Source: Glycera tridactyla
Taxonomy: Eukaryota
DNA length: 64,000 bases
Assembly: GCA_965644265.1 (NCBI GenBank)
Contig: OZ286476.1
Span: 20,026,001-20,090,000 of the forward strand
Direction of reading: 5' to 3'
In this document: piece by piece, positions 3,551 to 34,117 of the stretch
Layout: each line of letters opens with the position of its first letter
How positions within the stretch are numbered: position 1 is the stretch's first letter
Translations under genes and position numbers: made by a program
The notes under the pieces: model-generated
What the model saw: only the letters and a program-made list of their open reading frames with translations
The model's database searches: none
What the model was told of the DNA's origin: nothing

Positions 3551-6500
3551 TTGAAGAAGAGTTCTTCGATGCACCAGCAGCAACTCAGGTGACTACCATG
3601 GTTGTACAGACAAAGCCACGTGAGGTGACTGAAGTAACAAAGGTTACTCAACAAGTAGGAATGGTTCCTAGTGAGATTGTCATGGAGATACCAGCACAAG
3701 AAACCAAAGTAACAACGATGGAGAAAATAAGTCGACATGTTAGAACTGTAACAATTGGGGACAAAACCATCACCCGGGTTTATGAGCAGCGGGGCGATCA
3801 GCAGCCAGAAATTGTTTCTGAAGTCATGACTCTGCCAACAGGAGAACAAGTACAGCCAGATGAAGTGACTAGAAGACTTGTCGAAGCTGAACTTCAGCTG
3901 ATTCCATCACAACCGCAGATGGTCCAGGAACAAACAACACTAATTAAGCAAGGTCAGGTCACTGAGATACAGGTCACTCCACAGCCACAACAGATTCAGG
4001 CCACTAAGGTCCGACGTGAAAGTAGAACAATGATCCTTGGTGACAGGAAGATTACAATTGTAACTGAACAGCGAGATGGACAAGAACCTGAGGTAGTATC
4101 TGAAGTGATGACCCTGCCATCTGGTGAGCAGGTTAAACCAGATGAAGTTACCATGAAAATGGTACGAGCTCAATTGCTTACTGGAACCCCAAGTATGGCC
4201 CAAGTGCAGACGACCATCCAGCAAACAGGACAGGTTGTGGAGATGGTGATTCCACCTCAGACTGAACAAGTCCAGGTCAGAGAAGTACACAGGGAAAGTA
4301 GAACCATTCACATAGGAGGAAAAACAATAACTCAGGTTATTGAACAGAGAGATGGTCAGGAACCAGAAGTGGTATCAGAAGTTATGACTTTGCCAACTGG
4401 CGAGCAAGTCAAGCCGGATGAGATCACCAAACAACTTCTACAAGCACAACTGAAAACAGGACCTCAGACTTTGGTGCAGGAACAGGTTACAGTCATGCAA
4501 ACGGGACATGTAGCTGAAGGTCTTAAGATGCCAGAACCTGAGCAGGTACAAGTGTCAAAGGTGCGTAGAGAGAGCCGAACAATTGTTATTGGTGATAAAC
4601 AACTCTCACAGATCTTGGAGCAGAAAAGCGGGCAAGAGCCTGAGGTTGTAGCTGAAGTGATGACATTGCCAACCGGTGAACAGGTGAAACCAGATGCAGT
4701 TACTCTCGAACTTGTTAAGGCTCAGTTTGGTGTCACTCCACAAATGTTGACCCAGGAAATACCCTCGAAAGAAGCTCCTGAGAAAGTTACTGAAGTGCTG
4801 ATCATGCCACCGAGTGAGGAAGTCAGGGTTTCAAAGATTCGTAGGGAGAGTAGGACAGTTATGATAGGTGATAAACAACTTACACAGATTATTGAGCAGC
4901 GTGGACAGCAAGAACCAGAAATAATATCAGAATTTGTCACATTACCTACTGGTGAGGAGGTCAAACCAGATACAGTGACCAAGAAATTGGCCAAGGCTGT
5001 TCTGGGACCTTCTCCCAAAATGATGAGTACTACACAGGTAGCACTTCAGCCTACAGAGCAGGTAACTGGTATGGTCATTGAACCCCAGGGTGAGGAAGTT
5101 ATTGTATCAAAGGTCCGTAGAGAAAGTAGAACACTCAAAATTGGTGACAAACAAATTCAGCTTGTCCTCGAACAGCGAGGTGATGCAAAGCCAGAAGTGG
5201 TGTCAGAGGTCATGACATTACCAACTGGTGAGGTGGTTAAAACAGATGAGGTGACTCATCAGTTAATCTTAGCCCAGTTTGGACCTGGCCCTGAAATGTT
5301 AGTTCAAGAACAGAAGGAAGAAGTCCAGCCTGAACAGATAACAGCAGTTTCAGTTCAAGTTTCACCTCCAACGCAGATTGCCAGAGGTGTCAAGGTTCAC
5401 AAGGAGACTAGAACAATCCAGATAGGTGATAAAGTAGTCACCCAAGTCGTTGAGCAGAAAGGTGATCGTCAGCCAGATATAGTTTCAGAATTTGTAACTT
5501 TACCATCAGGTGAACAGGTGAAACCAGATGAGGTCATACAGAAGCTTGTAAGAACTCATTTCCAGTCATCACCTGAGATGATGGTCAAGGAGCAAACATC
5601 AGAGGTTGGCCCAGAACAGATCACTAGTATTGTGGTCTGCCCTGAAGGTGAAGAAGTGCAGATGACTCGTGTCCGCAGGGAAAGCAGAACCCTTAGCATT
5701 GGTAACAAGAAAATTGTCCAAGTTATTGAACAGCGAGAGAACCGTACTCCTGAAGTTGTCTCTGAGGTGGTAACATTGCCTACTGGAGAGAATATCAAGC
5801 CAGACGAAGTCACTACCCAATTGATCAGGGCCCAGATAGCACCACAAGTAGTTGTGAAAGAGCAGCCTTTTGATCAGACTCCAGTCACAGAAATTAAGGT
5901 GACACCACAGCCGCCAAAGCGCATGGCAGGTAAAAAGATCAGTAGGGAAACCAGGACTGTAATTCTGGGAGACAAAACACTGACACAGATAGTCGAGGAG
6001 AAAGAAGGTCAGCAACCCACAATCATATCAACTGTGGTCACCTTGCCCAATGGCAAGGAAGTAAAACCAGATAAGTCAACAATGGAAATGTTTGAGACTC
6101 AGTTGAAGAAGCAGACAACCATGGTCCTTGAGACCAAGCCAACAAAGGTTCCTGCCCCCAAAGACAAAATCTCTGAAGTAACAATTGTTCCAAAAGGAGA
6201 ACATACAGTTGCTGAAACAGTTCACAAAGAAACTAAAACAATTACTCTCGGTAATAAAACTGTTACTCAGGTGATTGAGAAGCGTGATCAAAGAGAACCA
6301 GAAGTTGTTTCCACTGTAGTCACTTTGCCCTCAGGTGAACAGGTACAGCCTGACGAGGAAACAATGAAAGTGATCAAAATGCAACTCCCACAACAACCGA
6401 TGGTCTTGGAGCCACTCATTCCAGAGAAAGTCACTGAGATTGTTATTCAGGCAACACCAGAGGAAGTTAAACCTGTAACTGTCCATAGGGAAACTAGGAC

Positions 6501-9500
6501 ACTTGTGATTGGTGATAAAGTAGTTAAGCAGGTTCTTGAACAAAAAGGTGATCAAGCCCCTGAAGTAGTGTCTTTGCTAATGCAGTTGCCTAGTGGAGAA
6601 CAGGTCCAGCCTGATGAGGCAACTATGCAAATGCTATCAGCACAGATTAGCGCAGTCCCACAGATGATGGTTAAAGAACAGCCAACTGAATTAATCCCAG
6701 ACAAAGTTACCGAGGTTGTTTTTGCTACTGCTGAACCGAAGCAAGTTCGCGGTGCAACAGTGAAACGTGAGACTCGTACTGTAACCATCGGTGACAAGGT
6801 TGTTACCCAGGTTCTTGAACAGAAAGGAACTGAGCAGCCAAAGCTTGTCTCCGAAATTGTGACACTCCCGTCAGGTGAGAAAGTGAAACCTGATGAAGTT
6901 ACAAAACAACTTTTGGAGGCACAATTTACAATTGGTCCTCAGATGATGGTGCGAGAGCAGAAGGCTGATGTGGCACCTCAGAAGATCACTGCAATTGTTG
7001 CTATACCTGAAGGAGAGCAAGTGCAGGTATCAAAAGTTCGCAGGGAAAGTCGAACAGTGACCATTGGTGAAAAGAAGCTCACCCAGGTGATTGAGCAGAA
7101 GGCTGAGAAAGAACCAGAAATTGTTTCAGAGTATGTGACTCTTCCATCTGGTGTGCAAGTCAAACCAGATAAGGTTTTGAAAGAACTTGTTCAGGCACAG
7201 GTTGGTACCACTCCACAAATGATGGTGCATGAGCAGCCAGAAGATATACCAGAGAAGGTCACCTCTGTCAAGGTCAAACCTATGGTTAAACGTGTTGCTG
7301 GCAAGAAAGTTCGCTCTGAAACTCGCACTGTAGTTATTGGAGATAAGACCATAACCCAAGTGGTTGAGCAGAGGGAAGGGCAAGAACCTGTCATTTCATC
7401 AACTACTGTTACACTCCCAGATGGCAAGAAAGCTAAACCAGACAAAGCCACGATGGAAGTATTTGAAGCCACAGTTAAACTACAGCCAACAATGCTCGTA
7501 CAGGAGGAGCCCAAGTTGGTCAAAACGCCAAAAGACAAAATATCAGAGATTGTGGTTGAGCCTAAAGGTGAGCAAGTAAGCATGGAGAAAGTCCACAGAG
7601 AAAGCAGGAAGATTACTCTTGGTGGTAAGACCATAATACAGGTTATAGAGCAGAGGGGGGATACAGCCCCAGAGGTCGTTTCTGAAGCGGTGCTCCTGCC
7701 CAGTGGCGAGCAGGCAAAACCAGACAAAGCAACTTTGAAGATGTTGCATGCCCAACTCCAAGAACAACCAGAGTTGACTGTGCATGAGTTAGTTCCAGAA
7801 GAAATATCGCAGGTCAAAGTTTCAATGCCCCAGTTTGAGCAGGTGAAAGGTGTGACAATGAGACGTGAAACTAGGACAGTGACAGTTGGAGATAAAACTA
7901 TCACTATGGTAATTGAGCAGAAGGGAGATCAGCAACCTGAAGTTGTCTCAGAATTTATGACATTGCCCTCAGGGGAAAAGGTAAAACCTGATCAAGTCAC
8001 AATGCAAATGCTCAAGGCTCAAATGACCCGTCAACCTGTGATGACACAGGAGCAAGTTGCTGCCATGCCAGCAGGTCAGCTGAGTGAAATCATCATCTCC
8101 CCAGAGCCAGAGACAATCCAGCCTCAGAGGACACGCAGAGAATCCAGGACCATTGTCATTGGTGACAAGACAGTGTCTCAGGTTATCGAACAGAGAGATG
8201 ATCGCCAACCTGAGATAGTTTCTGAGGTAGTGACTCTGCCCATGGGTGAACAGGTTAAACCAGATGAGGTGATAATCAATGTTCTAGAAGCACAGAAGCT
8301 TCGAGAACCAAAAATGATGGTGCCAGAACAAATGCTGCAGGTTTCACCAGAAGGTGTGGCTGAGTTAGTATTCCACCCACAGCCAGAACAGGTTAGTGTG
8401 CAGAAGATCCGGAAGGAGAGTCGTACAGTTACCATTGGTGACAAGACACTCACACAGGTTATTCAACAGACAGGTGACCAGGCTCCAGAAGTCGTCTCTG
8501 AAATATTGACTTTGCCAACAGGAGAGCAAGTTCAGCCAGATGAAACAACTAAACAAGTTCTGGAAGCCAGTATCAAAATGGCTCCACAGCTGATGGTGCA
8601 GGAGCAGGCCACTGTTTCTGAACCAGAAAAAATCACTGGTATCCTTGTAGCTCCTGAACCAGAAGAAGTCAAAGTGTCCAAAATTCGTAGAGAGAGTAGA
8701 ACTTTGACAATTGGAGATAAGAGAATCTCCCAGGTCATTGAACAAATGGATGAACGCCAGCCTGAAATTGTAGAGGAATTTGTGACACTTCCATCAGGCG
8801 AACATGTAAAGCCAGATGAAGTGACTAGAAAATTAGTTCAAGCACAGATGGGTGAAGTTCCTGAAATTATGGTTCTGGAACAGCCTGCTAACAAAGATCA
8901 GGTTAGTGAAGTTGTTGTCATACCACAAGTCAAACGCATAGCTGGTAAGAAAGTCCGCAAAGAAGTCAAGACAATTATGATTGGTGATAAGACGGTCACT
9001 GTGACAGTTGAGCAGAAAGAGAAACAGGAACCCCAAATCCTGAATGTGGTTGTCAAGTTGCCGAATGGTAAAGAGGTAAAGCCAGATAAGGAGTTGTTAG
9101 AAATTCTTGAGTCGCAGATAAAGTTGGAACCTAAAATGCTCATCAAAGAGCAGCCAACTATTAAACCATCTGAAAAAATCACAGAGATGATATTCGCTCC
9201 AGAGGAACCTCGAACACAGACTGTTAAGGTTCGTAAGGAGAGCAGAACTATCACCATGGGTGGTAAAACTATCAAGCAAGTCATCGAGAAGGTTGGTGAT
9301 GGGGAACCAGAGGTTGTCACTGAAATTGTGACTCTGCCAACTGGTGAAGTTGTCCAACCAGATGAATCTGTGAAGCAGATTCTACTGGCACAGATCAACC
9401 TGAAGCCAGAGATGATTGTTGAAGAGGAGCCTGTTCCAGAGCCTGAGCAAGTGACTGGTGTATCTGTCAGTTCTGAGACAAAGACTGTCAAGGGGCTGAA

Positions 9501-12500
9501 GGTTAAGAGAGAAACAAAAACTATCCGTGTGGGTGATAAGATCATCACCCAGGTCATTGAGCAGAAAGGTAGGAAGAAACCTGAGGTGGTATCATGTATA
9601 TTGACACTACCTTCAGGAGAACAGGTGGAGCCTGATGAAGCTACACTGAAGATAGTTGAATTCCATCTCAAGCCTGAATTCACACCGGAACAGATTTCTG
9701 AAATCAAATATGTGCCTACTGAAGAGGTTCAGGTCAAGAAAGTCCGCAGGGAGAGTAGGACGGTTGTCGTTGGTGACAAGAAAGTAACTCAAGTTATAGA
9801 ACAATCTGATGATCAAGAGCCACAGGTCGTCTCAGAGATTATGACCCTCCCAACAGGCGAAACTGTGAAGCCTGATGAGATTACAAAGAAAGTGGTTGAG
9901 GCACAGTTGAAGCAACAGCCACAGCTTAAAGCTGCAGAGCAAGTTGCACCTGGCTTTGAACAAATCACTGGAATCTCGTTTGCACCAATTACAGAAGAAG
10001 TCAAGGTTGAGAAAACCAAAGTGAGTAAACAGACCAAGAGTTTTACCATTGGGGATCAAACATTGACACAGGTCATTGAACAAGTAGGAAATGGACCAGC
10101 TGAGGTTGTTTCCGAAGTTGTAACTTTGCCATCTGGAGAGCAGGTTGTTCCGGATAAGATCATGCTTGAAATGTTCCATGCACAAATGCAGCAGGAACCT
10201 CAGCTGAGAGTTCAGGAACAGACCACAGTTTTGGCCCCAGGACAAGTCCAAGAGATAATTATACCACAGCCAGAGCAGGTTGGTGTTGGACAGATTCGAA
10301 GAGAAACCAAATCGGTGACTATTGGTGATAAGACCATTACTAGAGTAATTGAACAGAAAGGTGACAAAGAGCCAGAGATCATTTCTGAGATTATGACTCT
10401 GCCTACAGGTCAAGTTGTTGAGCCTGATGAGGTGACTCGTAGACTTGCTGAGGCTGAATTCAGGGAACCACAGATGATGGTTCAAGAACAAACAACTGTT
10501 CTCCAGCCAGACCAGGTTCAGGAGATCTCCATCATGCCGATTGAGCAACAGGTCCAGGCTGGTCAAGTTCGCCAAGAGACCAAGTCTGTAACAATTGGAG
10601 ATAAAACTGTTACACAGGTGATAGAACAGAGAGATGGTAGGGAGCCAGAGGTTATTTCGGAGGTCTTCACACTTCCAAGTGGTGAACAGATAGTACCTGA
10701 TGAGGTGACAAAACAAATGTTCCATGCAATGCTGAAAGGTGAACCACAAACCATGGTTCAAGAACAGATGACAATGTTCGCCCCAGGACAGGTGCAGGAA
10801 ATAATTGCACTACCCAGAGAAGAGCAAGTTCAAGTTGGCCAAGTACGACAGGAAACTAGGTCAGTGACTTTTGGCGATAAAACTGTCACTCAGGTAATCG
10901 AGCAGAGGGAGGGGAAAGAACCAGAAGTAGTGTCAGAAGTGTATACACTGCCGACAGGTGAACAGATTGTCCCCGATGAGGTAACAAAGCAGACCTTCAA
11001 GGCTATCTTGAGTGGTGAGCAGCCACAGATGTTAGCTCAAGAACAGACAACTGTTCTTGCTCCCGGTCAAGTGCAGGAGATTGTCATGATGCCTCAAGAG
11101 GAACAGGTACAGGTTGGCCAAGTGCGCCAAGAGACCAGATCCATAACTCTTGGAGACAAAACCATCACTCAGGTGATTGAACAGAGAGACGGTAGAGAGC
11201 CTGAAGTAGTATCAGAAGTATTCACTCTTCCAACTGGTGAACAAATTGTTCCTGATGAGGTCACAAAACAGACTTTGAAGGCAGTTATTAGTGGTGAGCA
11301 GCCACAGATGTTAGCTCAAGAACAGACAACTGTTCTTGCTCCCGGTCAAGTGCAGGAGATAGTCATGATGCCTCAAGAGGAACAGGTACAGGTTGGCCAA
11401 GTGCGCCAAGAGACCAGATCCGTAACTCTTGGGGACAAGACTATCACTCAGGTGATTGAACAGAGAGACGGTAGAGAGCCTGAAGTAGTATCAGAAGTAT
11501 TCACTCTTCCAACTGGTGAACAAATTGTTCCTGATGAGGTCACAAAACAGACTTTGAAGGCAGTTATTAGTGGTGAGCAGCCTCAGATGTTAGCTCAAGA
11601 ACAGACAACTGTTCTTGCTCCAGGTCAAGTGCAGGAGATAGTCATGATGCCTCAGGAGGAACAGGTACAGGTTGGCCAAGTGCGCCAAGAGACCAGATCT
11701 GTAACTCTTGGAGACAAAACTATCACTCAGGTGATTGAACAGAGAGATGGTAGAGAGCCTGAAGTAGTATCAGAAGTATTCACTCTCCCAACTGGTGAAC
11801 AAATTGTTCCTGATGAGGTCACAAAACAGACTTTGAAGGCAGTTATTAGTGGTGAGCAGCCACAGATGTTAGCTCAAGAACAGACAACTGTTCTTGCTCC
11901 CGGTCAAGTGCAGGAGATAGTCATGATGCCTCAGGAGGAACAGGTACAGGTTGGCCAAGTGCGCCAAGAGACCAGATCTGTAACTCTTGGAGACAAAACT
12001 ATCACTCAGGTGATTGAACAGAGAGATGGTAGAGAGCCTGAAGTAGTATCAGAAGTATTCACTCTTCCAACTGGTGAACAAATTGTTCCTGATGAGGTCA
12101 CAAAACAGACTTTGAAGGCAGTTATTAGTGGTGAGCACCCACAGATGTTAGCTCAAGAACAGACAACTGTTCTTGCTCCCGGTCAAGTGCAGGAGATCGT
12201 CATGATGCCTCAAGAGGAACAGGTACAGGTTGGCCAAGTGCGCCAAGAGACCAGATCAGTAACTCTTGGGGACAAGACTATCACTCAGGTGATTGAACAG
12301 AGAGACGGTAGAGAGCCTGAAGTAGTATCAGAAGTATTCACTCTCCCAACTGGTGAACAAATTGTTCCTGATGAGGTCACAAAACAGACGTTGAAGGCAG
12401 TTATCAGTGGTGAGCAGCCTCAGATGTTAGCTCAAGAACAGACAACTGTTCTTGCTCCAGGTCAAGTGCAGGAGATTGTCATGATGCCTCAAGAGGAACA

Positions 12501-13825
12501 GGTACAGGTTGGCCAAGTGCGCCAAGAGACCAGATCCGTAACTCTTGGGGACAAAACCATCACTCAGGTGATTGAACAGAGAGACGGTAGAGAGCCTGAA
12601 GTAGTATCAGAAGTATTCACTCTTCCAACTGGTGAACAAATTGTTCCTGATGAGGTCACAAAACAGACTTTGAAGGCAGTTATTAGTGGTGAGCAGCCAC
12701 AGATGTTGGCTCAAGAACAGACTACAGTTCTCGCCCCTGGTCAAATTCAGGAGATGGTCCTGATGCCACAAGAGGAGCAAGTCCAGATCGGCCAAGTGCG
12801 TCAGGAAACCAGGTCAGTTACTATTGGTGATAAGACTATGACTCAGGTTATTGAACAAAGGGAGGGCAGAGAGCCTGAAGTTATTTCCGAAGTTCTCACT
12901 CTCCCGACTGGTGAACAAATCCAGCCTGATGAGGTAACTAAACACATGTTTGAGGCACAGCTTAGAGGGGAACCACAGATGATGGTACAGGAGCAGGTGA
13001 CTACACTTGCCCCTGGTCAGGTTCAGGAAATGGTCATTGCACCTCAGGAGCAACAGGTATCACCTTTCCAGATCACTACTGAGATCCAACAAGCATCTAC
13101 GAGTCAACTTCCTACTGAAGTACATGAGCAATTGACCCCCCAGTCTGTAGAGGTCATCACAGAGGGTCTTGTTCCAGTTGCCCCAGAGCAAGTTGCACCA
13201 AGTCAAATAACTGTGGATACTACCCATGCAGGTGTAACTCTTCCACAGCCTGCTCAAGTGTATGAACAGGTCAGTCAAATGCCAACTGAAATGGCCACAC
13301 CTGAAGAAGAATTTCATGATGCACCTGAAAAGATGGCTCCTTCCACAGTACCTACAGAGACAATTGTTGCAGTCACACAGCAGCCACAAATTACTCAGAT
13401 TGGTGAGCAACCCGTGATTGATCAGCCCAAGGAAGTGATAACTGAGCAGGCACCACTTCAGCCAGAAGGTATACAGCCACAGGAAGTAGTTGCTCCCGCT
13501 GCTCAGCCACAGCCCCAAGTCACAGAACAAGTTGTTCTTAAGAAGGAACCAGTACCTGAACAACCAAAGCAAGAAGTCATGGAAGATGTCTCCATGATCA
13601 TTCAACAGCCTGTACAACCGCAGCAGGTGATGGAGGAAGTCTCCATGGTCATGGCACCAGAACAACCTCAACCAACACAAGTTACTGAAGATGTCACCAT
13701 GCAAGTAGTGCAGCAGCCGACAGAAGTAACCCAAGATGTGAGCATGATGATTCAACAAGAACAGAAGCCTCTTGATGTTATCGACTCGGCACAGATGACA
13801 GTGTTGACTCCACAGCAGCAGCAAG
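3551..13825 (+). CDS. Giant internal exon (10,275 nt, phase 1-1) encoding a ~90-aa repeat array
   Basis: 3446-aa ORF; TACTAAT branch-like motif 3517-3523; acceptor ctgcag|TT at 3550/3551; donor CAAG|gtatct at 13825/13826; length divisible by 3. Confidence 0.93.
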
Positions 13826-14420
13826 GTATCTACTACTGGCATGCTGCTTCCCTCAGCAGCGCATGAACATAGACAAGCTTGCATGGAGACCACCATCATG
13901 ACAATAAACCCATATTTGCAGAAATGCTACAATAGTATGCAGTTTTAACAATGTGTTTGAATGCTACAGAATGCCTTAGATAGATTTTTTTTCTTTCTTT
14001 TGATATTAAACACTTGAATGAGCACTTGTCAGTTGAATAACATCTTTTGTTTATTTTCATTTCATTTCATTTCAAATATTGATGTGCGCTTTGCATTTTA
14101 GTAAATATGTGGCACATGGTACATCAACCAAGTTGCATATTTATCTGTCAGTATTAGATGTTTTTTCTGTACGCAGTGCATACTAAAGTTTCACAGAAAC
14201 AAACTTAACTTGTACATGCTCTTTTAATGGTTTCATTCCATGTTATTGATGCCTATTTACTCACATAAATTTTTCATTCTTTTTCTGTTGCTATGTTGCT
14301 ATATGTTCATGCATCTTAAATCTTTCCGTCCTTGAATCATTCCATACTTAAGTATATATCACTGTTACTCCACCCTTGTTTCAATCATTTCAACCTTATT
14401 CTTTATGGACATACTCAACA

Positions 14421-17400: not shown

Positions 17401-20400
17401 AACAGCAGGTCACTACCATAATCAGGTCTGCAGAAGTTGTACAGCCGAAGCCACTTCAGGCTATGGAACAACAAGCCCAGTTCCAGATGGGACAGATGGG
17501 AGAATTCACTGTTGAGGCCATGCCAGTGGATGCAACTCAAGAGCAGGTTATGACACAAGTGACTACAGCTCAGGTCTTGCAACCTACCCAGTTACAGGCA
17601 ATAGAACAACAGGCACAGTTCCAGATGGGACAAATGGGAGAATTCACAGTTGAGGCAATGCCAGAAGAATCAACCCAAGAGCAGGTGATGACACAAGTCA
17701 CTACTGCTCAAGTTGTGCAGCCTGCGCAACTGCAAGCAATGGAACAGCAGGCCCAGTTCCAGATGGGACAGACTGGAGAATTCACAGTCGAAACAATGCC
17801 AGAAGAATCGACCCAAGAGCAGGTGATGACACAAGTTACTACTGCTCAAGTTGTGCAGCCTGCGCAACTGCAAGCAATGGAACAGCAGGCCCAGTTCCAG
17901 ATGGGACAGACTGGAGAATTCACAGTCGAGACAATGCCAGAAGGTGCAACTCATGGGGAAGTTCTGACTGAAGTAACAACAGCCCAAGTGATGCAGCCAA
18001 TGCAGATACAGGCGATTGAACAACAAGCTCAGTTCCAAGTGGGTCAAGTTGGAGAATTCGTTTCAGAGATGGTTCCTCAAGAAAGTACAACTGTTGAAGT
18101 CACTACAAAGGTGACCTCTGCTGAGGTACAACAGCCTATGCACATGCAGGCTATGGAGCAACAAGAACAGTTCCAAGTCGGTCAGGTACAAGAATTTGCT
18201 GTTGAAATGAAGCCAGAGGGTGTTACTCAGGAGGAGGTTGCACCAGAGGTTACCTCTGCCATGATCATTCAACCAACACAACAGCAGGCACTGGAACAAC
18301 AGGCACAGTTTGCTGTTGGACAGTTTGGTGAAATAGACACTGAAGTTGCGCCAGATGTTGTAGCACCGACTGATGTTACTCTTGATGTAGCACAAGCACA
18401 AGCCGAGCCTCAGATAATGACTCAAGTTGGTCTGCAACAAGAAGCCATGGCCTCTGAGGTGATTGCAGAAGGAATTCAAGAGCAGACACCTGAGCTGATT
18501 GCACCACAGGAGATTGCTGTTGATGTCACTATGGCGTCACAGGTGACACCTGCTGAAATTCGTGTTCAGGAGCAAATCTCGAGAGTTCTCTCTGAGGAAA
18601 GTCTTGAAGAGGAGTTTGTTGATGCTGCTGAAGAAGTGGCTGTACCTACCGAAATTGGTGTTGCCACAACCACAGCGCAAGTTGAAATGCCTCAAGCCAC
18701 ATTCCTAACAGAACAACAAGCACAGATGCAGATGGAAGTGACTGCTGAAGGTGTGGTGGCACCACAACCTGAAGAGATCATTGCTGGACAGGTTCAAGTG
18801 ACAGCTGTCACGGCAGAGATGGGTATCAAACCACAAACACTCGTTATGGAACAAGCACCAGAAGAAATGCCCAGTGAACAAATTGCAGAAGGTGTCCAAG
18901 CACCAGAAGGTGTGGTGATCGCTCCAGGAGAAGTGGCACCAATGGTTGTCACCGCAGAATTGAGTGGTGTACCACAAGTCCAAGCCATGGAACAAGCTCA
19001 AACAGTTCCAGGAGAAGAGGTGACCAGTGGAGTTATGGTTATTGAAGGTCAGACACTTGCACCTGAACAAGTCACAGGGGTCATGGATACTGCTACTGCA
19101 GCGTTGATGATGCCTTCCCAGATGCATGTTGTTGAACAACAGGGGCAAGTCACCACAGAAGTTATTGAGGAGTCTGTAACTCTGCCAACTGGTGAAACTG
19201 TTGTAACACAGAAAGTTATCACTAAAACGTCAACTGCAACACCACAGGAACCCATGGTCATGCAAGTCGGTCCACAGGAAGTAGTCATGACGAGTGAGCA
19301 AGTTGATACCGTTCAACCACAGCAGATCCAGGAAATGACAACGCAACAAGTCGTCACTACCTTGGGTACTGCAACTGCTGAGGGACAAACTACTTTGACC
19401 ACCGCCCAAGATTTCACCATGACTATGGAAGGTCAGCCACAAGAGATCACTATGGTAACAGATATGCAGATGATGGAGCCACAGCAGGTTACTACCGAGA
19501 TGGATTCCGCCATGGTTACCGTCCCGAGTATGATGGCGACTGAAGTTGTCTCAGAAGGTATAACCATGGATGTGACACAGCCGACACAAGGTAACGGTCA
19601 CGCATGGTGTGACGCTAGCGAAATGGCATCCTTCTTTGCATACTTTTTATACTTCATGTGATGCATGTCTCATTCGATTACTATCATTATTATTAGTACA
19701 ATTAAATGTATTGCATGAATTATGAATTAAAATTTGCATGTTACTTAATAACTTTAATTTGATTTGTGTGTATTCTTGTTATTAGTTTAAGTCACATTTT
19801 TATTTTGCTCTTAATTCTTTTCTTCTGTTTGGTCTATTCTGCAGCCACTCATTCTAAGCTATGTCTTGCATTTGAACACTCCGAGTGTTTCTGTTGCTTA
19901 GAATGCATTCATCTCATTTTAACATTATGATACGTCTTGCTTTTCTTTTCTGGATAACTGCTCTTGATTTGTATTCCTGTTATGGAATCAAGAGATGTGA
20001 TATCTAGCTACTAGCGCTGATATTCTTTTTCAGTTTTTGCTCAAATATAAGTTGCATGTGGCATGATGCTGCATCCTAATATAGTGATAATTTGTACTTT
20101 TTATGTGTGTTTTGTATGTAGTCAAGTCACTTATCAGAGGGCGGAACATCTAGCTCTCTTCAATCTGAAACACAATGCATATGTTAACCTGTGGATAGAT
20201 ACATGCCGTTGAACTATCAACCAACCAACCTTTCAGAGATGATGACATTATCTAGTTTTGACTCTCGGAAGTATTTCTTCTGTTTGAGATCACTAGAAAC
20301 GAATGTGATTCAGAGACTGCGCATTGCAAAGAGTGTAAGATGTGTGTATTCAGCAACAACAGAGCCTTATCCTTTGCAGCAAATCTGCAAAAAGTTTTCA

Positions 20401-23445: not shown

Positions 23446-26400
23446 TTTTTTAGTGATAGGAATCATGTCAGAGACATATTTCCAGATTGTACTGGCAACA
23501 GGTCCATGAAATGTGTTCCAAATGCCCAAATTATTTTTTGGCTTGTATGGGATTTGAACCATCAACCTTCCAGTTTGGCACCCTTGCCAGCAACAAACTG
23601 CCAGCGCTCTTGTCCNNNNNNNNNNNNNNNNNNNNNNNNNNNNNNNNNNNNNNNNNNNNNNNNNNNNNNNNNNNNNNNNNNNNNNNNNNNNNNNNNNNNN
23701 NNNNNNNNNNNNNNNNNNNNNNNNNNNNNNNNNNNNNNNNNNNNNNNNNNNNNNNNNNNNAAGCATCTGCATCCATAATGGAACTCCATAATAGTTGCCA
23801 GACGATGAGTTGATACTTCATACATTCCAACTAAGGTGTACAATAGTATGCGCACTCATTGAAGTCTGAGGGGTAACTGGAAAATATCAATAGAGACACA
23901 AGTCGTCCATGATTCTGGCAGGTGTTTGCCATGGGTTATCATATAAGGGTGCTCACGGTATTTGGTCATATCATTAGTTGTGTAAACATCCAATAGCATG
24001 TGTAGGGAGACATATGTGATCATGCCCCTCTCACACACCAATACACACACACACACACACATACACACACACACACACACATTTGCGTGCATGCAAACAA
24101 ACAAGCAACACAGACTCACACACACACATTGATCGCTACATTCCAGCTACATTCCGAAGTTCTGCGCTGAAAACTGATGTTGGCTCATTTCAAATATGTG
24201 ACATTCCCCGCATCACTTTCATCATTCCCCCATCATTCCATCCATCATCTCATCTCGTCATTCATCATCCATAATATCATTTCTATGTTATTGTGATCAT
24301 TTTTGACATGGTCAAAGGTCTGTGCAAGTGTTTTATTTTTGGATCTGTACTTTTGAAGATTTTGATGATCAAAAGTACCGATTCAAATCTGCAAATGCTA
24401 CCCCAGATCTCGGCCATGCACTGCGGCTTTGGACACATCAAAGTGTCTATTCTGCAACTTTGAATGTTTGACTGATTGTTTTTTTTCTCTTTTAATTTAT
24501 TTTATCTGATGCTGTGTCTTCTCCAGAAGTGCAAGAGGGTATGACAATCTCGTAAGTTGGTTTACTTCTATTATTGTCTCAACCAAAAGGAAACAAATAT
24601 CAGTCATTTTCTCTAAATATAAAGCAGCAAATGCTTAGGTGATTCGATGTGATGTTGGAATTTCAATTGTTCAGGCAAGTTGAATATGCCTAGTGAATTT
24701 CATCAGTATTCCGCTTCACTGAAATGTCAGTAACTTTTAAGTGCAATTTCTTTCATGCCAAAGATTTTGTTGTTTTAAATCAAGATCATTTGTAACAAAT
24801 TGGAGGGTTAGTGTAATTATATGCCTTGTGTTTCATGACACATGACATCTGCTCAAAGCACATAAGGTTATCGCTGATATGCCGAAAAGCACCCATGGTT
24901 TCAATATACTCTTAATGGCTCATAAAAAAAGCACAGAGCCATTTGCGGTGTTCTTGAAAGTATCTTGCTAAAATCTAATGAAATTTTTCAACTAGACGAG
25001 TTGTGCTTTACTACCTATCATCCTCCAAATGTGAATAGTTACTTCTTTGGAGGCAGTGAGGGGTTTTGCTATGTGCTCTGCCCAAGCAAGTAATTCCTTA
25101 CTGAGAAATGCTCAGCGTGAACAGACCTTTGAAAATATTTTATCATAAAGTTGGGTGAAGTTTGGTCCCAGACTGAACATCATACTTTGATACCCATGAC
25201 GATAGACCCCTCGGTGAGAGACCACCTGTGACGAGAGATTGCCTCGAATGTCAGTAAATAGTAGTCTCCTGAAAGAGATGGTCTCTCATTGGATGTATAT
25301 TTGACTATGTCAATTAGAAAAGCTGCCCTGATAAAGCAATCTTCGTCAGAGGTGGTCCCTCATCAAGGGTCTGTCATTGGTGGTTTGACTGTATCATCCA
25401 GGGATGTGATTCTTCTGTGAATCCGCATATTCCCGACAATCAGCAGGCCATGTGCATGACAGCAAAGAGCCTTCTCTGCTGAGTATATTGGCTTTTAGAT
25501 CATGAAAATTGGACCAGTATTAGTGGGGATAGAGCACAATGTTTGTATGGAGTTCTGGTAGCCTTCAGTCACCAGTTGTTTGGGTTTGTTGATCCACAAA
25601 ATCTTAGTGTAAGTGCTACCGGTCAGGTTTTCAGTGTTTTTGTTTGTGAGCCAATCACATCCCTGATCATCACAGGTTTGACTGTATATTTACATTTTCA
25701 CATCCTGTGTTTCATCTCATTATAGTTTGACCAGCCAGCAGCAGGTGATCACTGAAGATACCACTGACCTGACTGTCATTCCTGGTAAGTACAAACCTTT
25801 CAGTGTCTACCCTTATCATTGTATGTATGTACGATGTAGTACAGTTTTCATTTGTAATGAATCAACCCCACCCCCACCTCCCTCCATTATAATTCTCCTG
25901 GTGGCTGCCATCTGGCCTTCCTTGGCTACTTTTATTGTCAGATCAGGGGTGAAGAAGTTTGTCCTGGAAAGTGTCATGTGCGATAATGACAATCAAACAA
26001 TTTTAACTTTGGAGGGATAGCACTGCTTTTAAATTTTGAAGGATAGCACTTATCGTGAATTATCGAAGAATTTGGTGAAATTTCTTAGCCTATAAGATTT
26101 TGATTCAACTGAAACGAATCAGTCCCTTATTTGAATCTTCGTATGAGTGTGCGATGCCTCCGGTTACTCGAGCTTCTAGATTGTAAAGTGAATATTTGAT
26201 TAGGAGATACATATAGAGCAGTCTTATATACTTGCCTCTTTCAAATTACCAATAAATTTGGATTTGCCAGCATTTGAATTTTTCATATTCACAATGCCGT
26301 TGTACCGACTGGTCTCTCCCTGCATTCAATGAATTATTCTCATATTGAGAATGAAACTGTGTTTAATAATACACCATTGCAATGTACAAATTACATCCTC

Positions 26401-29400
26401 AGAAATCATCTGATTTCTTGTGGATTTGAACGAGGATCTCTGCCTAGCCTTTGAAGAAGCAAGCTGTCTATCTCCATGTGCCTATATTATTCCTTTATAT
26501 GCTCAGACACTGTCAGGGTTTCTTTTGGAGATTGATTTAGCTTATTTCATGATTGTGCTCAAAATCATCCAAGTTATGTGGTATGTGAGTTGATCCCTGT
26601 CTTGGTTTTCCACTACTGAGACTAGCGACTGTATCAGGTTCATTCTCTGAACAGCACATCCAAGGAAATATATTACAGTCGAAAGCCACATCATGCAATT
26701 GCTGGTCTATTTTGTAATTGATCAGCCATATCTCATTTGTACAAGGAAGCCAGGTGCCACCCAACCAATTTTGTGGAAGTAATAATGTTGTTTGGTGTGT
26801 GCTCAGTTCTGTGCATGTCTTTTACTGCATCTTATTCCCACCTTATCTGCATTCAATGTTTGTGCACTTCAGTGTTGAAGGATTTCATCTGGGTAATGCA
26901 AATGTGCAGGGTGTTGTATTCAAGGCAAGGGTGCAAAGTATCAAAGATTATGGGGAAGGAAATTCAAGAGTGTATTTTTCTGCACCAAAATGGGTGGTAC
27001 ATGTTGAGCATTTGGCCATCCTCGGCCAGTTTCCACTCTACTGAAAATGCTGAATTCAAGAATTTATCCAATGATATAATGAACTGAACCATTTCAGTCA
27101 TAAACACCAGAAATGGAAAAGATTCTGCTATTGTGATGGCGTAATTCATCGAAATAACAAAAAAAAAGAGCAGAAAATTCTACACAGTAGAGATGTAGAT
27201 AACACATATTTCTACTCCACAGCTGCTCTGTGTTTGAATTCCATCTCAGTGGCAACTCGTAAAAAGTAAATAATGTTTGGAATCGCATAATTTACTTTAT
27301 CAGGTGAAAGTTATCTTGGCTATGGTACTTGCTTATCATAAATATCGTCTCAGAACAGACTCATGTATCCATCCATTGACGAACTTCACGATTCTCAGTA
27401 ACTTGATTTTCAGTACCCTTTTTAGGGGTCAGGGATTTCAGTTCACTTTATCCCGCAATTGGGTCTATGGAAAACTACACTTTGGCTTGGTTCCCTGGCA
27501 CATAAATGGAAATCTTCTTGGTTCTGCACAAACAGTTTACGACTCATTTTTGACTTTGGTGTGTGTTGCATGTTTTTATTTGCTTGCATGTCCTCTCTGT
27601 GTGAATTACAGATGAGCAGAGACAACGTAAGCGAGAGCGTGAATTTTCCCTGTCAAAGCTACGAGAATTGCGTGAACGCAGTCCCCGAAAGTTGGAACCA
27701 GCATTGAGGTTGAAATTTGAGAAGACCAAAACAATTGCCTCCCCAGATGTTCAAGATGCTGGCAGTGTTAAAGTGGGAGTTGTCCCAAAAACAGTCCAAA
27801 AAGATGAGGAATTACCTCAGAAGAAGCAGGAAAAATCTTTCTCTGAGATAGAAGTTAGGTCAACCTCCTCGGTCTCATCTATAGAAGACACTGATCCCGT
27901 GGAGGAGGAGGTTGTGAGTGCTACTGAAGTGACTAAACCAAACTCCAATATTGACTTCTCCAACATCAAAATGACTGTGCCACTACAAGCACAGAGCATC
28001 TCAGTGGTTGAAACTTCCCATTCAGTAATTGATGATGACGCAAAGCAAGCAGTCGTTACACCAATCCAAGAGAGGAATCCTTTGGAGGTTACCATTAGTG
28101 AAGTTAAAACTATGAAAGAGCCAGTTGTGATACGTGCAAGATATCCAATTGATGATGGAGATGAATTACCGACACGTAAAAGAGAGAAAGTTGTGAAAAA
28201 GGTAGAATCAATAATCATGGCCAATGGTGAATCAGGGCCTAAACCCCCTTACAGGACATTAGTCGATATCAAATCTGATGATGTACCAAAGCCAGTGGTT
28301 CCAGAAGTGGAAGCAAAACCTCAGCGGAAGACGCGAATATGGTGGACAGAACTTGATGATGAGGAAAGTCGGCTTGCTCAAAATGCTCTCGAATCTTCAT
28401 CAGAAGTTCCTCCGAAGGAGATTCAAATTCCTGAGCAAAAACTGGAAGAGCCAGTGCCAGTTACAGCAGAGGAAATGCCATCGCAGTCTGAGGAAAATCA
28501 GCTGCTTCAATATATTGCCACGATCACCTCTACCGACTCATTCGAGACAGCTCTTTCTGAACAACTACAAGGTGATAAATTTGGACGCAAGCTATCTGAA
28601 TCAAGCTCAAGCACCTCAGAATCAAGTGATGGCGGAAGTTCAGTCATAGACACATCTGATATTGATTCCAAATACAAAATAAGTCAATTGGTGAAAGAGA
28701 AAACTGATGTCAAACGGGATGTTCTGTCACCAATCAAATCACCAGTGACAGAATCTGAATCTGAAGAGAGTATCAAAAGTGTGGAAATGAAAGAAATTCC
28801 CAAAAAAGACGAAGATCCTCTGTCTGATACTCAGACATCAGATCATACTCAGGATCATTACGATTCAACCGAAGATGTGAAAGATGTTGCACATCAGGAT
28901 GACCATGTTAGGGAAACAACTACTGATGATCAAGATCCGTCTCCAGACGAAGACGATCTTCGAGATACAGACAATAGTAGATTCGCTGATCAGTCAGCTG
29001 AAGCATTCTCATCAGATGATGATGAAGATGAAATATCGCAAGAATCGAAACCGATGACTCCGATTATTGTCGTGGAAGAGGAGTACAATGTTCATGCCAC
29101 ACCACATGGAGTACCGCCACTTGACCTTGAGCAGTTGGATAGTAGCGAGAACGGGTGGTCAACCAAGGACGATGATGAAGATGAGGAGCTGGAGCTGTTG
29201 AAAGAGGATGAGGATGATGATGATTTCACGGAGGAAGATCTCCCGCCTGTTGTTGGGCAACCCCCACCCTATGTCCCATCAGCAACTGAATCGGACGAAG
29301 ATGGTGAGGAGTATACGGAAACCGTCATAGAGAGCAATGTAACAGAGCAAGTTTACAATATGCAATCATCTGATGGGGAATGGACTAATGGTATTGCTCA

Positions 29401-32400
29401 ATATACACGCAAAGTAATAGACAAATATGACCAACAAATGCCTTCCCCCGGTGAGAATGGGATAAATCTTACAGAAACATCAATTGTCACCAATGAGATA
29501 CCATCTGAGATACCGCAGACCAACACTGTTACAGAGAGAGGGCGACATGCCATCATAACCAAAACAGAACCTAGTGTTTTGGAAACGATTAAAATTGAAG
29601 CTCACATCATCAGAGATGACAAAGCTTCACCAAAGTTTTCAGTTTTCAAATCTTCAACTGAAAAAGGATCAGAGGAAGCTGGTGATTATGAGGTCCAGAC
29701 ACGAGAGATCCATCCTGAGGAAGATGAGACCACATATGAAGTGAATGTCAGGCCCGAGACCCTCCTTGATTGGCAGCAACAACTCCAACGGGGCTCTCAC
29801 CTCAAATATGAAGCAGATAAAACCGTCAGAACAGAAGAAATGCAAATACTTGATGAGGTAACGGTTGAAACCAAGGTCAAGCAGGTCAAAACAATAAAGA
29901 TGGAGATGACGAATACAGGAGACTTTTCTGTTGAAGAAACCACAGAAGTTCAGACAGACACCGATATGTCTGAACACCGTCAGAGCAAAGAACGAGAACA
30001 AACTGTCATCCTCCACACCGTGGCTGATAAGTCAGAAGGTAGCCATCTTGACCTGCCCGAGATCATTCCAGCTCTCACTGGACGCAGTGATGCTTCAGAT
30101 TTTTCAGCGCGTAGTGACATTTCTGCACAGAGTGATCACAGTGGAGATCGATCATTCAGTAACCTTAGCAACCATGGTGCGTCACTAAGCAACCAGTCTG
30201 ACCACTCATCACTCAACAGCGAGAACGTCCCATTTGAGGAGTTCAAAACAATCATTGATGCATCTGATTCTTCTGAAGAGCCTTATGTGTGTATCGCAAT
30301 CAGTTCATATGACCCTGAGAATGCTGAGGTCATGTCACTACATGAAGGTGAAAAGGTCGAGGTACTCGACGATGTTCAAGATGACTGGTGGTATGTGCGG
30401 AAGCTATTTGACCAGCGGGAAGGATGGGTGCCGGGACAGTTCCTACGAGAACGCGACGTGTTTGAAAACATGGTGGACTCCCAGCTCAAGCAAGCTATAG
30501 ATACTCTGCCATCTCAATCAAGTAAGAACCTCCATAATGGATCCAATAATACATTTATAATGACAGCAGGAATAAGTTTTAGACAAGAAATCTCTGTAAT
30601 GTACATTTTTCATTGAAGCACAAGCACCACACTATCACAAGTGTTGTACAGTCCACTCTATCTATCTTCTGATCTATTTTTTCCTCCAATATTTCAAGAA
30701 TTAGGACTGCACAGGCTGTGGTGTAACTTTTCCTAAATTTCGGAAAAATTATTAGTGTTGCGCAGTAGAAATATCATCATAAGTCAAGTGTCTTAGTTTT
30801 ATTGTTTTATGGTCAAGGGCCCTACATTGGCCAAACTATTCAGGAGCAGGCTGGCCCCTGAGTTGATATTTTTGGTAGCCAATCAGTACATTGTGAATGA
30901 CAACATCTCAAAATTTCAGGCCCCTTGGTTTCTGACTTTTGAAATATGGTAGCCAGAGGGTAGATTTGGTAGCCATTGGCTACTCACAGGTAGCAAGATA
31001 AAGAGCCCTGTGGTTCATGTGAGACTATGCTCAAAGTCAAAATCCATCATCATATAATGAAATCCATCCATCCAATCAATGTTGATGGAAATTCTCGAAA
31101 ATCATCTTCATTCAAAAGTAACAAACGATAGAAAACTATTAGTATTATTAAGATACGAGGTTTATCCCTTGGCCTCCTGGATTGAAGAAACATTCAGCAT
31201 CAATTGATCAGTTAGTCAATCAATCAATCAATCAATCACTCAATCCTTGTCTTTAGCTCTTCATGTTAGGTTTCCATCCAGGATGGATCAAAAAGGTGAT
31301 GAGTGACGAGGGTCACAAGGAAAGTGGAGCTGAACTTGCTTTGATATATTAATCATTCAAATTTCTTGGCTCATGGTTCCTTTAATTGTGGAATATGTTG
31401 CACAGGGTTGAGGTTAGTGAGCAGTTGATTGCTTTGGCACTCTGGTTCTCAACAGATCCTTTTGTATCTCTATGGATGGTTCAGGTGTTTGAATATTGTC
31501 TCAGCACTCTATTCAAAAAGCATTTCAAATGTCATGTGCTTCTGAGTGTTTTGGAGATGGAACTATATCTTCTCAATCGAAGATCCAATGAGATAAGGAT
31601 TATATCTGTCAAAGGAAAGACCTTATAGATAAAATTATTTCATGTGATTAAAAACCATAGAGATTAGGTTTATTTCATGTTAATGGAAAACCATCTATAT
31701 AAGGATGATATCACATTTGAGGCATGTTTAAAGAAATAAGTGCAATTGTNNNNNNNNNNNNNNNNNNNNNNNNNNNNNNNNNNNNNNNNNNNNNNNNNNN
31801 NNNNNNNNNNNNNNNNNNNNNNNNNNNNNNNNNNNNNNNNNNNNNNNNNNNNNNNNNNNNNNNNNNNNNNNNNNNNNNNTGTTTGTGTGTGCATATTTAA
31901 ACCTTGTGAATACTAACATGTCTGTCTGTCCCCCGATCCTGTTATCCACAGAGGAAGATTTTGAGGGTGAACCGCTAGCCCCCGAGATCGGCCGGCCTCT
32001 TTCTGGCATGCATGCACCAGATGGCAGCGAGGTGCAGTTTGATTGCATTATCACCGGCAACCCCGCGCCAACCATCGCCTGGTTTCACGAGAGCTCTCTG
32101 ATCTCACCCGGGGACGATTTCATTCAGAGCTATGATGAAGAGAACAAAAAATGTACTCTTATTATCCGTGAAGTGTTCCCCGAAGACACTGGCCGCTATA
32201 CGGTTGTTGCGAAAAATCTTATGGGTACGGCAACCTGCTCTGCTGAGCTCATTGTCGAGGAAGGTGAGCGTAAATCTTGACTCTCACGAGTGTAATCTCA
32301 ATGGCAATCTCACAAATATCTACATTTAAAAAAATTGGAAGTTTTTCCCTCTGAGAGAAAGAGATTCACTGGGAATCTGGGTTCACCCATGGGAGGATTC

Positions 32401-34005
32401 CATGTTAATTCAGGTGAAATGAAAGTCTCGGTTTATTTGAATGCATGTTTTCCAGTTTGTGCTTATCATTGTTTAGATTTATTTAATCCATCTTGCATGG
32501 TGTGATTTTTTTAATGTGTGCTTGTAATTGTATTCCCTCCTGATATAATGGCTTTCTTAAGTGTTTGTTTTATGTGAACTTGAGAGTAGCATGGTTAGTG
32601 TTCCTTACCTTCTCAGGTATGAGTCCATGACCTTGGGACAATCATAAGAATTCACAAGATAGACCCTTGTAGTAATTCCACGATCAGGTCCACTATGTGA
32701 TGTCCCTATTCAAGTCCTTAGATATTGCTCATATGTTTGTGAATTAGTGTTGTGAAACTAGTTTCCCTCATTATCTATAAGCTAACTACTCAATATCATA
32801 TATATGTATAGTCATAGATTATTGATAAGTTGGTCTATGCTGTTGATATCTAGAATTTTACAGCTTTTTTATACCCCTGTTTTTTTCTCATGTTTTCTTG
32901 AATTGCTCAGCTGATGATGATTCATGTATTGTTCATTCACAATGAAAACTTTCTTACTCTATTTGTTAGTGTTAGGGAATAATATTAGGATAATGAGCAT
33001 CTGGACATATTTCAATTGATTTTGATATCATAATCAATGTTTAGTCAACATTTTGAAAAGAAAGATTTAATGTATGTGTGTTGACTGGTGTGGATATAGG
33101 AGTGGGAGATTTTGTATTGAATATGCTCGGAAAGCAGTCTCCTGTCTGCAGCAGGTCCTTTATCCCACTTGACAACCCTTCAGGTTCCCTATCATCTTGT
33201 GTTCAGGGTTTGTGAGAGTGATGCCTGCAGGGGAGAGAATATCCAGCTTTCATTAACCAGGAACACACGGCATACAATTATAATTGCGGTGTTTTTGGCT
33301 CAAGTAAAAGACAATATGGCTTATTTGTTGTTCTTCCTGTGATTTTTTTCAGCACCCGAGCAGCAGGTGGTGGAGGGTATGGCACCCCAGTTGGTGCAGA
33401 AACCTAAACCACAGGTCGTCAACGAGGGCGAGGATGTTACATTCGAATGTCGTCTCGTTGCTAACCCCCAACCAGAGGTTGGTCAATGTTTTATTGTTGC
33501 TTGACTGTTACTTGTGGATGATTATGTTTATCAAGCTGCCCTCATCTATTGCAAATCCATTAGATGCTTATTGTATGACAGCATTCATGATAGCCCTGAA
33601 AATGAACGTCTTATAATGGGTAGAACAACACATTTCAGTATACAGACAGAAAGCCAACACATTTTCATTGAATCTAANNNNNNNNNNNNNNNNNNNNNNN
33701 NNNNNNNNNNNNNNNNNNNNNNNNNNNNNNNNNNNNNNNNNNNNNNNNNNNNNNNNNNNNNNNNNNNNNNNNNNNNNNNNNNNNNNNNNNNNNNNNNNNN
33801 NNNNNNNNNNNNNNNNNNNNNNNNNNNNNNNNNNNNNNNNNNNNNNNNNNNNNNNNNNNNNNNNNNNNNNNNNNNNNNGTGAATTTCTTCCATGCTATTG
33901 TACATGGCTATCTAAGTATACACATGTATGCATGCACATGCATTTATACAGAAGTGTGTACAAGCGTATACATGCATGCATGGATATGCTCTCTGTCTGG
34001 CTCTT

Positions 34006-34078: not shown

Positions 34079-34117
<39 letters not shown>

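Follow-up and report, generated by a model that had tools for sequence, protein, structure and literature searches.

What is known of titin-family springs comes almost entirely from vertebrates, flies and nematodes, in which immunoglobulin (Ig) domains are combined with disordered, PEVK-like sequence. The PEVK segment of titin consists of short repeats of ~26-28 amino acids (aa), dominated by Pro, Glu, Val and Lys, that have no stable fold, and the repeat of nebulin is a ~35-aa helical unit with an SDxxYK motif. Here we describe an array of 34 tandem units of ~92 aa, transcribed from a single giant exon, in a 64,000-nucleotide (nt) stretch of the genome of Glycera tridactyla (assembly GCA_965644265.1, contig OZ286476.1, positions 20,026,001-20,090,000). 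This whole stretch is referred to here as the window, and all coordinates are positions within it. On balance, we consider it probable that the exon, which could be skipped in frame, encodes an uncatalogued module in the I-band-like part of a titin-family gene, that each unit forms a 56-aa mini-domain joined to a tether, and that the units stay unpacked and serve as a series elastic element or spacer.

Several described elements share features with this array, namely titin PEVK, the N2B unique sequence, the PEVT segment of Caenorhabditis elegans TTN-1 and the SEK and 68-residue repeats of crayfish I-connectin. All are long tandem non-Ig segments rich in Glu, Val, Pro and Lys (the array is also rich in Gln and Thr), and, like the array, they are encoded by a very large exon whose skipping would keep the frame, sit in the extensible part of the protein and have a presumed series elastic role. 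However, they are short disordered repeats, whereas the period of the array is 92 aa and its core, constant at 56 aa, is predicted to be folded. The array also falls outside the PEVK/PPAK class by its period, its summed Pro, Glu, Val and Lys content (41%), the lack of a PPAK match and a predicted local distance difference test score (pLDDT) of 84-90 in the core, although its linkers taken alone resemble that class. Like the array, Ig I-set and Fn3 domains form long arrays of ~90-100-aa units in the same gene, and I-set exons lie downstream, but they are sandwiches of 7-9 strands with a core Trp, in contrast to three to four predicted strands plus a helix, no Trp and 56 of 92 residues predicted to be ordered. 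Nebulin repeats differ as well, since the period of the array is 92 aa and its predicted structure mostly beta, with no SDxxYK in the consensus and four Tyr in total.

Organization and Transcription of the Array

The array lies in an open frame of 3,446 codons on the + strand (3526-13866), in which the limits of one giant coding exon can be read directly (Table 1). A polypyrimidine tract precedes the AG on the acceptor side and a GT follows on the donor side. Both ends are in phase 1, and the exon is thus skippable in frame. An anchor placed on the turn motif occurs 34 times at a spacing of 80-94 aa (median 92), and a profile hidden Markov model (HMM) built from the units recovers every one of them. 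A preliminary description of this locus, made from the letters of the sequence, had already counted 34 repeats of ~90 aa with a conserved core of ~55 aa, and both figures hold, the core being 56 aa in all units; the motifs it quoted, such as RRESRTVxI-GDK-TITQVIEQ, are those of the consensus. The interval it gave, 3730-13030, starts at the first residue of the first core; its end overshoots the last good unit by ~50 nt and lands in the degenerate 35th unit. It had further remarked on the lack of Trp and near lack of Cys, and the 3,116 aa of the array indeed contain no Trp and two Cys, with Val, Glu, Gln, Thr, Pro and Lys abundant and a mean net charge of about -4 per unit.

The units are of different ages. 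Mean identity is 49% between all unit pairs, 45% within units 1-25 and 88% within units 26-34, and Tandem Repeats Finder detects this last, young part of the array only. The protein sequences of units 29, 30, 32 and 33 are identical. No period of two was found in the identity between units within the array.

Transcription was assessed with RNA contigs from four public runs belonging to two studies, placed on positions 2600-8599. Coverage is continuous over 3549-8599, and no contig falls in the intron at 2600-3548. Upstream of 3549 the contigs continue into exon sequence that has no match in the window, and translation through this sequence runs on into the giant exon without a stop. Because the intron is empty and the contigs jump at 3549 to other sequence, the runs contain spliced transcripts and the acceptor is confirmed. 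Contigs were ~7.5 kb long, a length that would put their ends near the start of the near-identical units.

The transcripts differ from the window at three third codon positions, by one Leu/Val exchange in a linker and by one in-frame deletion of 3 nt, also in a linker. At position 4522 the window has C and all four runs have G (Leu to Val), at position 6015 the window has A and all four runs have G (a third codon position), and at position 3985 one run lacks the 3 nt, within a Pro/Gln linker. These three differences are probably allelic, with the note that on transcript data alone the A-to-G change at 6015 looks the same as editing would.

Differences among the units themselves speak to selection. 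Pairwise, units 28-33 differ almost exclusively at synonymous sites (proportion of synonymous differences, pS, 0.03-0.16; proportion of nonsynonymous differences, pN, 0-0.009), which argues that the protein sequence is under selection. Among the older units pS is saturated at 0.79, and pN is 0.29 in the core vs. 0.47 in the linker. The array is under purifying selection, linkers included, and the core is more constrained than the linker.

Table 1. Positions in the window of the array, its parts and the surrounding features.
Feature	Position	Strand	Basis or remark
Single giant coding exon	3551..13825	+	10,275 nt, 3,425 codons; AG acceptor and GT donor read directly
34 tandem units, ~92 aa each	3634..12981	+	Anchor spacing, alignment, HMM 94-125 bits per unit
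Young sub-array, units 26-34	10480..12981	+	Tandem Repeats Finder, 279 bp x 8.9 copies
Units 28-33, nearly identical	11029..12702	+	Differ by 3-11/279 nt
Degenerate 35th unit	12982..13236	+	HMM 14.9 bits
Exon tail, Q/P/V/E-rich, without recognisable unit	13237..13825	+	Translation and composition
Two decayed unit copies, next large exon	18708..19241	+	HMM 21.5 bits (E 1e-5) and 19.8 bits (E 3.5e-5) in a search of the window
Unit 13, folded alone	6946..7221	+	AlphaFold2 pLDDT 84-90 over residues 31-86, <50 over 1-19
Predicted core of unit 13, columns 31-86	7036..7203	+	Three 8-10-residue strands, short bridge, 11-residue helix
Basic unit 9	5857..6123	+	Net charge +3
Basic unit 14	7222..7494	+	Net charge +3
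Basic unit 20	8869..9138	+	Net charge +3
EEEF-x-DA motif, first copy	3553..3573		Very start of the giant exon
EEEF-x-DA motif, second copy	13303..13323		~320 nt past the last good unit
EEEF-x-DA motif, third copy	18606..18626		Next exon, directly before the two decayed units
Q/E/M-rich repeat, next large exon	17454..18419		Seven copies, exact 46-aa (138-nt) period
Acidic exon, Ser/Asp/Glu-rich	27668..30616		Large; ends with the SH3 domain
SH3 domain	~30290..30451		Closest solved relatives by sequence: p47phox and Fyn SH3
I-set Ig exon	34080..34400	+	Pfam
Exon-like open reading frame	37449..38006		DFRxxL-like motifs; no Pfam match
I-set Ig exon	38952..39458	+	Pfam
IQ motif	within 41500..42186	+
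Acidic exon, Ser/Asp/Glu-rich	43324..44823		Large
I-set Ig exon	52393..52929	+	Pfam
Runs of N	23616..23760; 31750..31879; 33678..33878

Relatives in Sequence and Structure Collections

The unit had been described earlier as neither Ig, Fn3 nor PEVK, and as a candidate for profile and fold searches. Those searches, among them Pfam and three comparisons by fold, gave no confident match to a known family. Scanning the whole 3,446-aa product with hmmscan against Pfam at E up to 1 gave sub-threshold noise only and no Ig, Fn3 or PPAK/PEVK domain; a profile search of all Protein Data Bank (PDB) sequences reached a best E of 0.3, and Foldseek against the PDB a best E of 0.15. Structures of the ESM Atlas matched at template modelling (TM) scores of at most 0.50, and the feature search of the same atlas gave no usable match.

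Relatives were found among marine transcripts. When the unit profile was scored exhaustively against 1.84 billion representative proteins (E up to 0.001), four proteins matched, two of them genuinely (P0001, 1.6e-29; P0002, 2.9e-18). The other two were rejected as chance matches of short motifs: P0003, bacterial repeats with a TVTIGDKT-like strand, and P0004, FG-GAP-like repeats containing LPGGEVVKPD. A word search with a two-unit alignment returned 20 proteins. Each is an entry of MERC, which catalogues transcripts of marine eukaryotes; counting cluster members, they trace back to at least five runs of the Tara Oceans eukaryotic metatranscriptomes. All these Tara fragments (P0001, P0002 and P0005-P0030) represent a single type of array in which ~90-aa units of two kinds, A and B, strictly alternate. 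They keep the core length and residues Gly41, Lys43, Glu50, Gln51, Pro57, Leu66, Pro67 and Gly69 (numbered by unit column), share the period and are true homologues. Their array differs from the Glycera array in its strict A/B alternation, a Lys-rich strand 1 without Ser or Thr, a shifted helix and the loss of Asp75. The module is therefore present in at least one other animal, marine and planktonic, and its relatives among the 1.84 billion proteins are all fragments.

Residues 1-60 of P0001 and P0002 consist of sequence outside the repeat and then a degenerate unit, and the other fragments are pure A/B repeats; in these two proteins we probably see where the array of the other organism begins. 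No contig encoding P0001 is on record. No annotated proteome among the 1.84 billion proteins yielded the module, and a word search with the giant protein, with candidates of 1,895-6,030 aa, returned none. In the full-text literature, as far as its incomplete coverage extends, we found no description of such a module, and a paper on connectin evolution treats neither annelids nor this repeat (PMC12198301). The array constitutes a new family of modules, in a protein class that is already known.

Conserved Core and Predicted Fold

Length variation is confined to one part of the unit. The core comprises columns 31-86, exactly 56 aa in 34 of 34 units, and all indels fall between cores, in linkers of 24-38 aa. 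Five core residues are invariant (Gly41, Leu66, Pro67, Gly69 and Asp75), and Glu34, Lys43, Glu50, Pro57, Pro74 and Pro90 are conserved in at least 90% of units. Hydrophobic residues recur in a strand-like pattern at columns 31, 38, 40, 45, 48, 49, 59, 60, 63, 64, 66 and 72, and in an amphipathic-helix pattern at columns 77, 81, 82, 84 and 86. All 34 units share with 40 distinct Tara units the 56-aa core, Gly41, the 25-residue distance from it to Leu66-Pro67-x-Gly69, Glu50-Gln51 and Pro57-Glu58.

AlphaFold2, run on unit 13 with an alignment of 29 units, placed three strands (residues 31-40, 43-52 and 58-65), followed by a bridge (71-72) and a helix (76-86). A model of units 12 and 13 together, aligned with 28 other neighbouring pairs of the array and two Tara pairs, recovered these elements in each unit (pLDDT 71-82), with linkers at 28-37 and a predicted TM score (pTM) of 0.34. 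Strand and helix positions thus agreed in three units across two runs, and the invariant residues Gly41, Leu66, Pro67, Gly69 and Asp75 fall at predicted turns or at the helix cap. The unit is therefore predicted to fold as a three-strand antiparallel beta-meander plus a helix, in 1-2-3 order with the helix covering one side, much as the preliminary description had guessed. Its picture of beads on a string also fits the two-unit model, in which the low linker scores and pTM point to independent beads on flexible tethers. The description of the linkers as variable overlooked that linker columns 14, 17, 19 and 26 are hydrophobic in 90-100% of units, that Pro21 is conserved in 86%, and that the linkers are under purifying selection and, by the profile alignment given below, share ancestry with the unit's second half.

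The same data can be set against an array that is disordered throughout, a PEVK-like entropic spring whose hairpins and helix are transient and whose conservation reflects composition, recent duplication or short linear motifs. The residues abundant in the array, its lack of Trp and near lack of any aromatics would suit such a spring, as would a low ESM-based recognition score, the fall of pLDDT to 71-82 in the two-unit model and the low-complexity flanking exons of similar chemistry. However, disorder does not readily account for a core held at one length in 34 units and in 40 distinct units of another species while indels are restricted to linkers, for invariant Gly and Pro at predicted turns with alternating hydrophobic residues in the strands, or for a core more constrained than its linker. 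The fold is also predicted reproducibly and confidently, and both the 41% content of PEVK residues and a period of 92 aa rather than ~28 aa are foreign to PEVK. We consider a wholly disordered array unlikely. In a charge-hydropathy plot, 32 of 34 cores lie on the folded side with linkers borderline, which is consistent with a folded core but weak. Mutual information among 29 non-redundant cores, computed as an independent check on hairpin register, mostly reflected the history of subgroups and was of no use for this purpose.

PUR-alpha/beta and polo-box structures recur as weak shape matches, and this raises another arrangement, in which units, or a unit and a linker strand, pack into blocks or a rod to give a semi-rigid spacer of ~17 two-unit domains. 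The even number of units, the strict A/B alternation of the Tara relative and a linker that keeps a strand-like motif homologous to strand 3 could all be read in this way. The PUR repeat (Whirly-like, beta-beta-beta-beta-alpha), which was the top or a recurrent weak shape match, has the same order of secondary structure and a similar repeat size. Yet the array has no sequence match to the PUR domain (PF04845) in Pfam or in the PDB profile search, and PUR repeats intertwine in twos into one globular domain, which is not what is predicted here. Polo boxes, likewise, are recognized by the Pfam POLO_box model and by a paired six-strand sheet with a helix, neither of which the array shows. What the array shares with both is the generic order of a meander plus a helix, and both work as pairs, unlike the prediction for the array. 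PUR-like pairing of units was rejected, being unsupported by the two-unit model (pTM 0.34) and by an identity pattern without a two-unit period, and we regard packing of the units as very improbable.

Charge is the remaining conspicuous property of the core. Strand 1 is basic and strands 2-3 are acidic, a pattern kept in the distant relative, and the best-conserved positions are often polar or charged (Glu34, Arg36, Lys43, Glu50, Gln51, Glu58, Ser61, Thr65, Glu70 and Asp75). Together with the invariant core length and regular period, this could indicate a periodic binding scaffold or ruler, each unit offering a charged surface to a filament or to a repeated partner, as nebulin and the kettin region do on actin. 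A basic subtype of unit that recurs every 5-6 units (units 9, 14 and 20) would add to the impression of regularity. Against this, the array contains no known actin- or myosin-binding motif such as SDxxYK, linkers of 24-38 aa make the spacing inexact, no partner is known, and cross-strand salt bridges or protection of edge strands would explain the charges equally well. With a super-repeat signal that is weak, we find a ruler or scaffold doubtful.

The basic subtype is recognizable by a K-R-x-A-G-K-K stretch ahead of the core and an N-G-K turn, as well as by its net charge, positive where the mean is negative. Units next to it also correspond to one another (8/13/19 and 10/15), and the spacing looks like a relic super-repeat of 5-6 units.

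Internal Symmetry of the Unit

The unit contains a trace of an older repeat. Aligned with hhalign, the profiles of columns 1-46 and 47-92 match without any offset (2-35 on 2-35), with an E of 1e-5 and a score of 25.9, compared with 9.3 +/- 2.0 and a maximum of 15.8 in 60 column shuffles. The 92-aa unit is thus an old tandem duplication of a ~46-aa half, and the linker represents a decayed copy of the strand 3-turn-strand 4 segment and not free filler. The half-unit duplication and the decayed copies at the edges of the array suggest that the folded module and the surrounding Q/E/V/P-rich low-complexity sequence share an origin.

The next large exon carries a Q/E/M-rich repeat whose period is exactly half of the 92-aa unit (Table 1). 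As a relative of the half-unit it was rejected, since its hhalign score of 15.9 is on a par with that of the best column shuffles and is not significant; the equal period is merely suggestive.

Another sequence feature of the core lies at columns 32-35, the start of predicted strand 1, where [R/K][R/K]x[S/T] is found in 17 of the 34 units and RRx[S/T] in 11 (0.9 in shuffled sequence). Neither units 26-34 nor the Tara relatives carry such sites. Control by phosphorylation through these strand-1 sites is no more than a possibility.

Gene Context

On the same strand downstream of the array, Pfam identifies three I-set Ig exons, and an IQ motif lies among them (Table 1). An SH3 domain ends the first of two large Ser/Asp/Glu-rich acidic exons. 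Same-strand I-set Ig exons accompanied by SH3 and IQ elements are the context by which we recognize a titin family gene, and this is what surrounds the array. The exons that flank the array are of low complexity and similar to it in chemistry.

Within an exon-like open reading frame, several DFRxxL-like motifs are spaced ~23 aa apart. These recall the actin-binding motifs of smooth-muscle myosin light chain kinase and twitchin. An acidic EEEF-x-DA motif, FFAT-like, occurs three times, and from its three positions the motif brackets the array. Three runs of N interrupt the window.

Proposed Mechanism and Implications

In the reading we favor, the module would be a 56-aa mini-domain, made of a three-strand antiparallel meander, a short fourth strand and an amphipathic helix around an aliphatic-only core, followed by an acidic Q/E/V/P tether of ~36 aa. 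At low force, the 33 linkers between cores, each of ~36 residues, would extend entropically over a contour of ~0.4-0.45 micrometre. The chain enters the predicted fold at the start of edge strand 1 and leaves it at the end of the helix, a geometry from which we infer peeling, not shearing, and hence low mechanical stability. Peeled from strand 1 and the helix, the 34 cores would yield at modest force and add up to ~0.6-0.7 micrometre, giving a fully extended array of ~1.1 micrometre. Within the I-band-like region of a titin-family protein, the array may thus act as a series spring of long range and low stiffness, or as an adjustable spacer, a role we infer from the titin-like gene context, and the symmetric exon would permit isoforms that lack it. 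The conserved charges could supply internal salt bridges and edge-strand protection to the small aliphatic core, or form a binding surface.

Several points weigh against this interpretation. The array exon and the Ig exons are linked here by their position on the same strand, and the fold comes from AlphaFold2 runs whose alignment was shallow and drawn solely from paralogous units. A domain of 56 aa with three strands, one helix and no aromatic core residues may be marginally stable. The linker consists to 29% of Val, Ile, Leu, Met and Phe, with conserved positions, and may hold structure that the model missed. Charged residues occupy many conserved positions that are predicted to face outward, as would be expected of a binding role no less than of a structural one.

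A more specific version of the mechanism would have an autonomous mini-fold arise from a low-complexity 46-aa repeat within a titin-like gene of one spiralian lineage, unfold at low force and be tuned in stiffness by phosphorylation. A basophilic kinase acting on the strand-1 RRx[S/T] or [R/K][R/K]x[S/T] sites, present in about half of the units, would loosen many beads at once. Taken as a whole, this version seems to us improbable.

In addition to the Ig domain and the disordered stretch of PEVK type, the titin family would have in this array a third kind of element. It would be a small tethered bead of strands and a helix, free of aromatic residues, and its copies take up over 3,000 residues of the titin-like protein of a spiralian. 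The module appears to be restricted in lineage, and its function is proposed from context. Should the predicted fold hold, the module would give mechanical studies a very small domain of a new type. It would also seem to be an instance in which low-complexity repeats gave rise to a folded domain that decays into such repeats again. In the animal itself, the array may help to explain the large working range of worm muscle.

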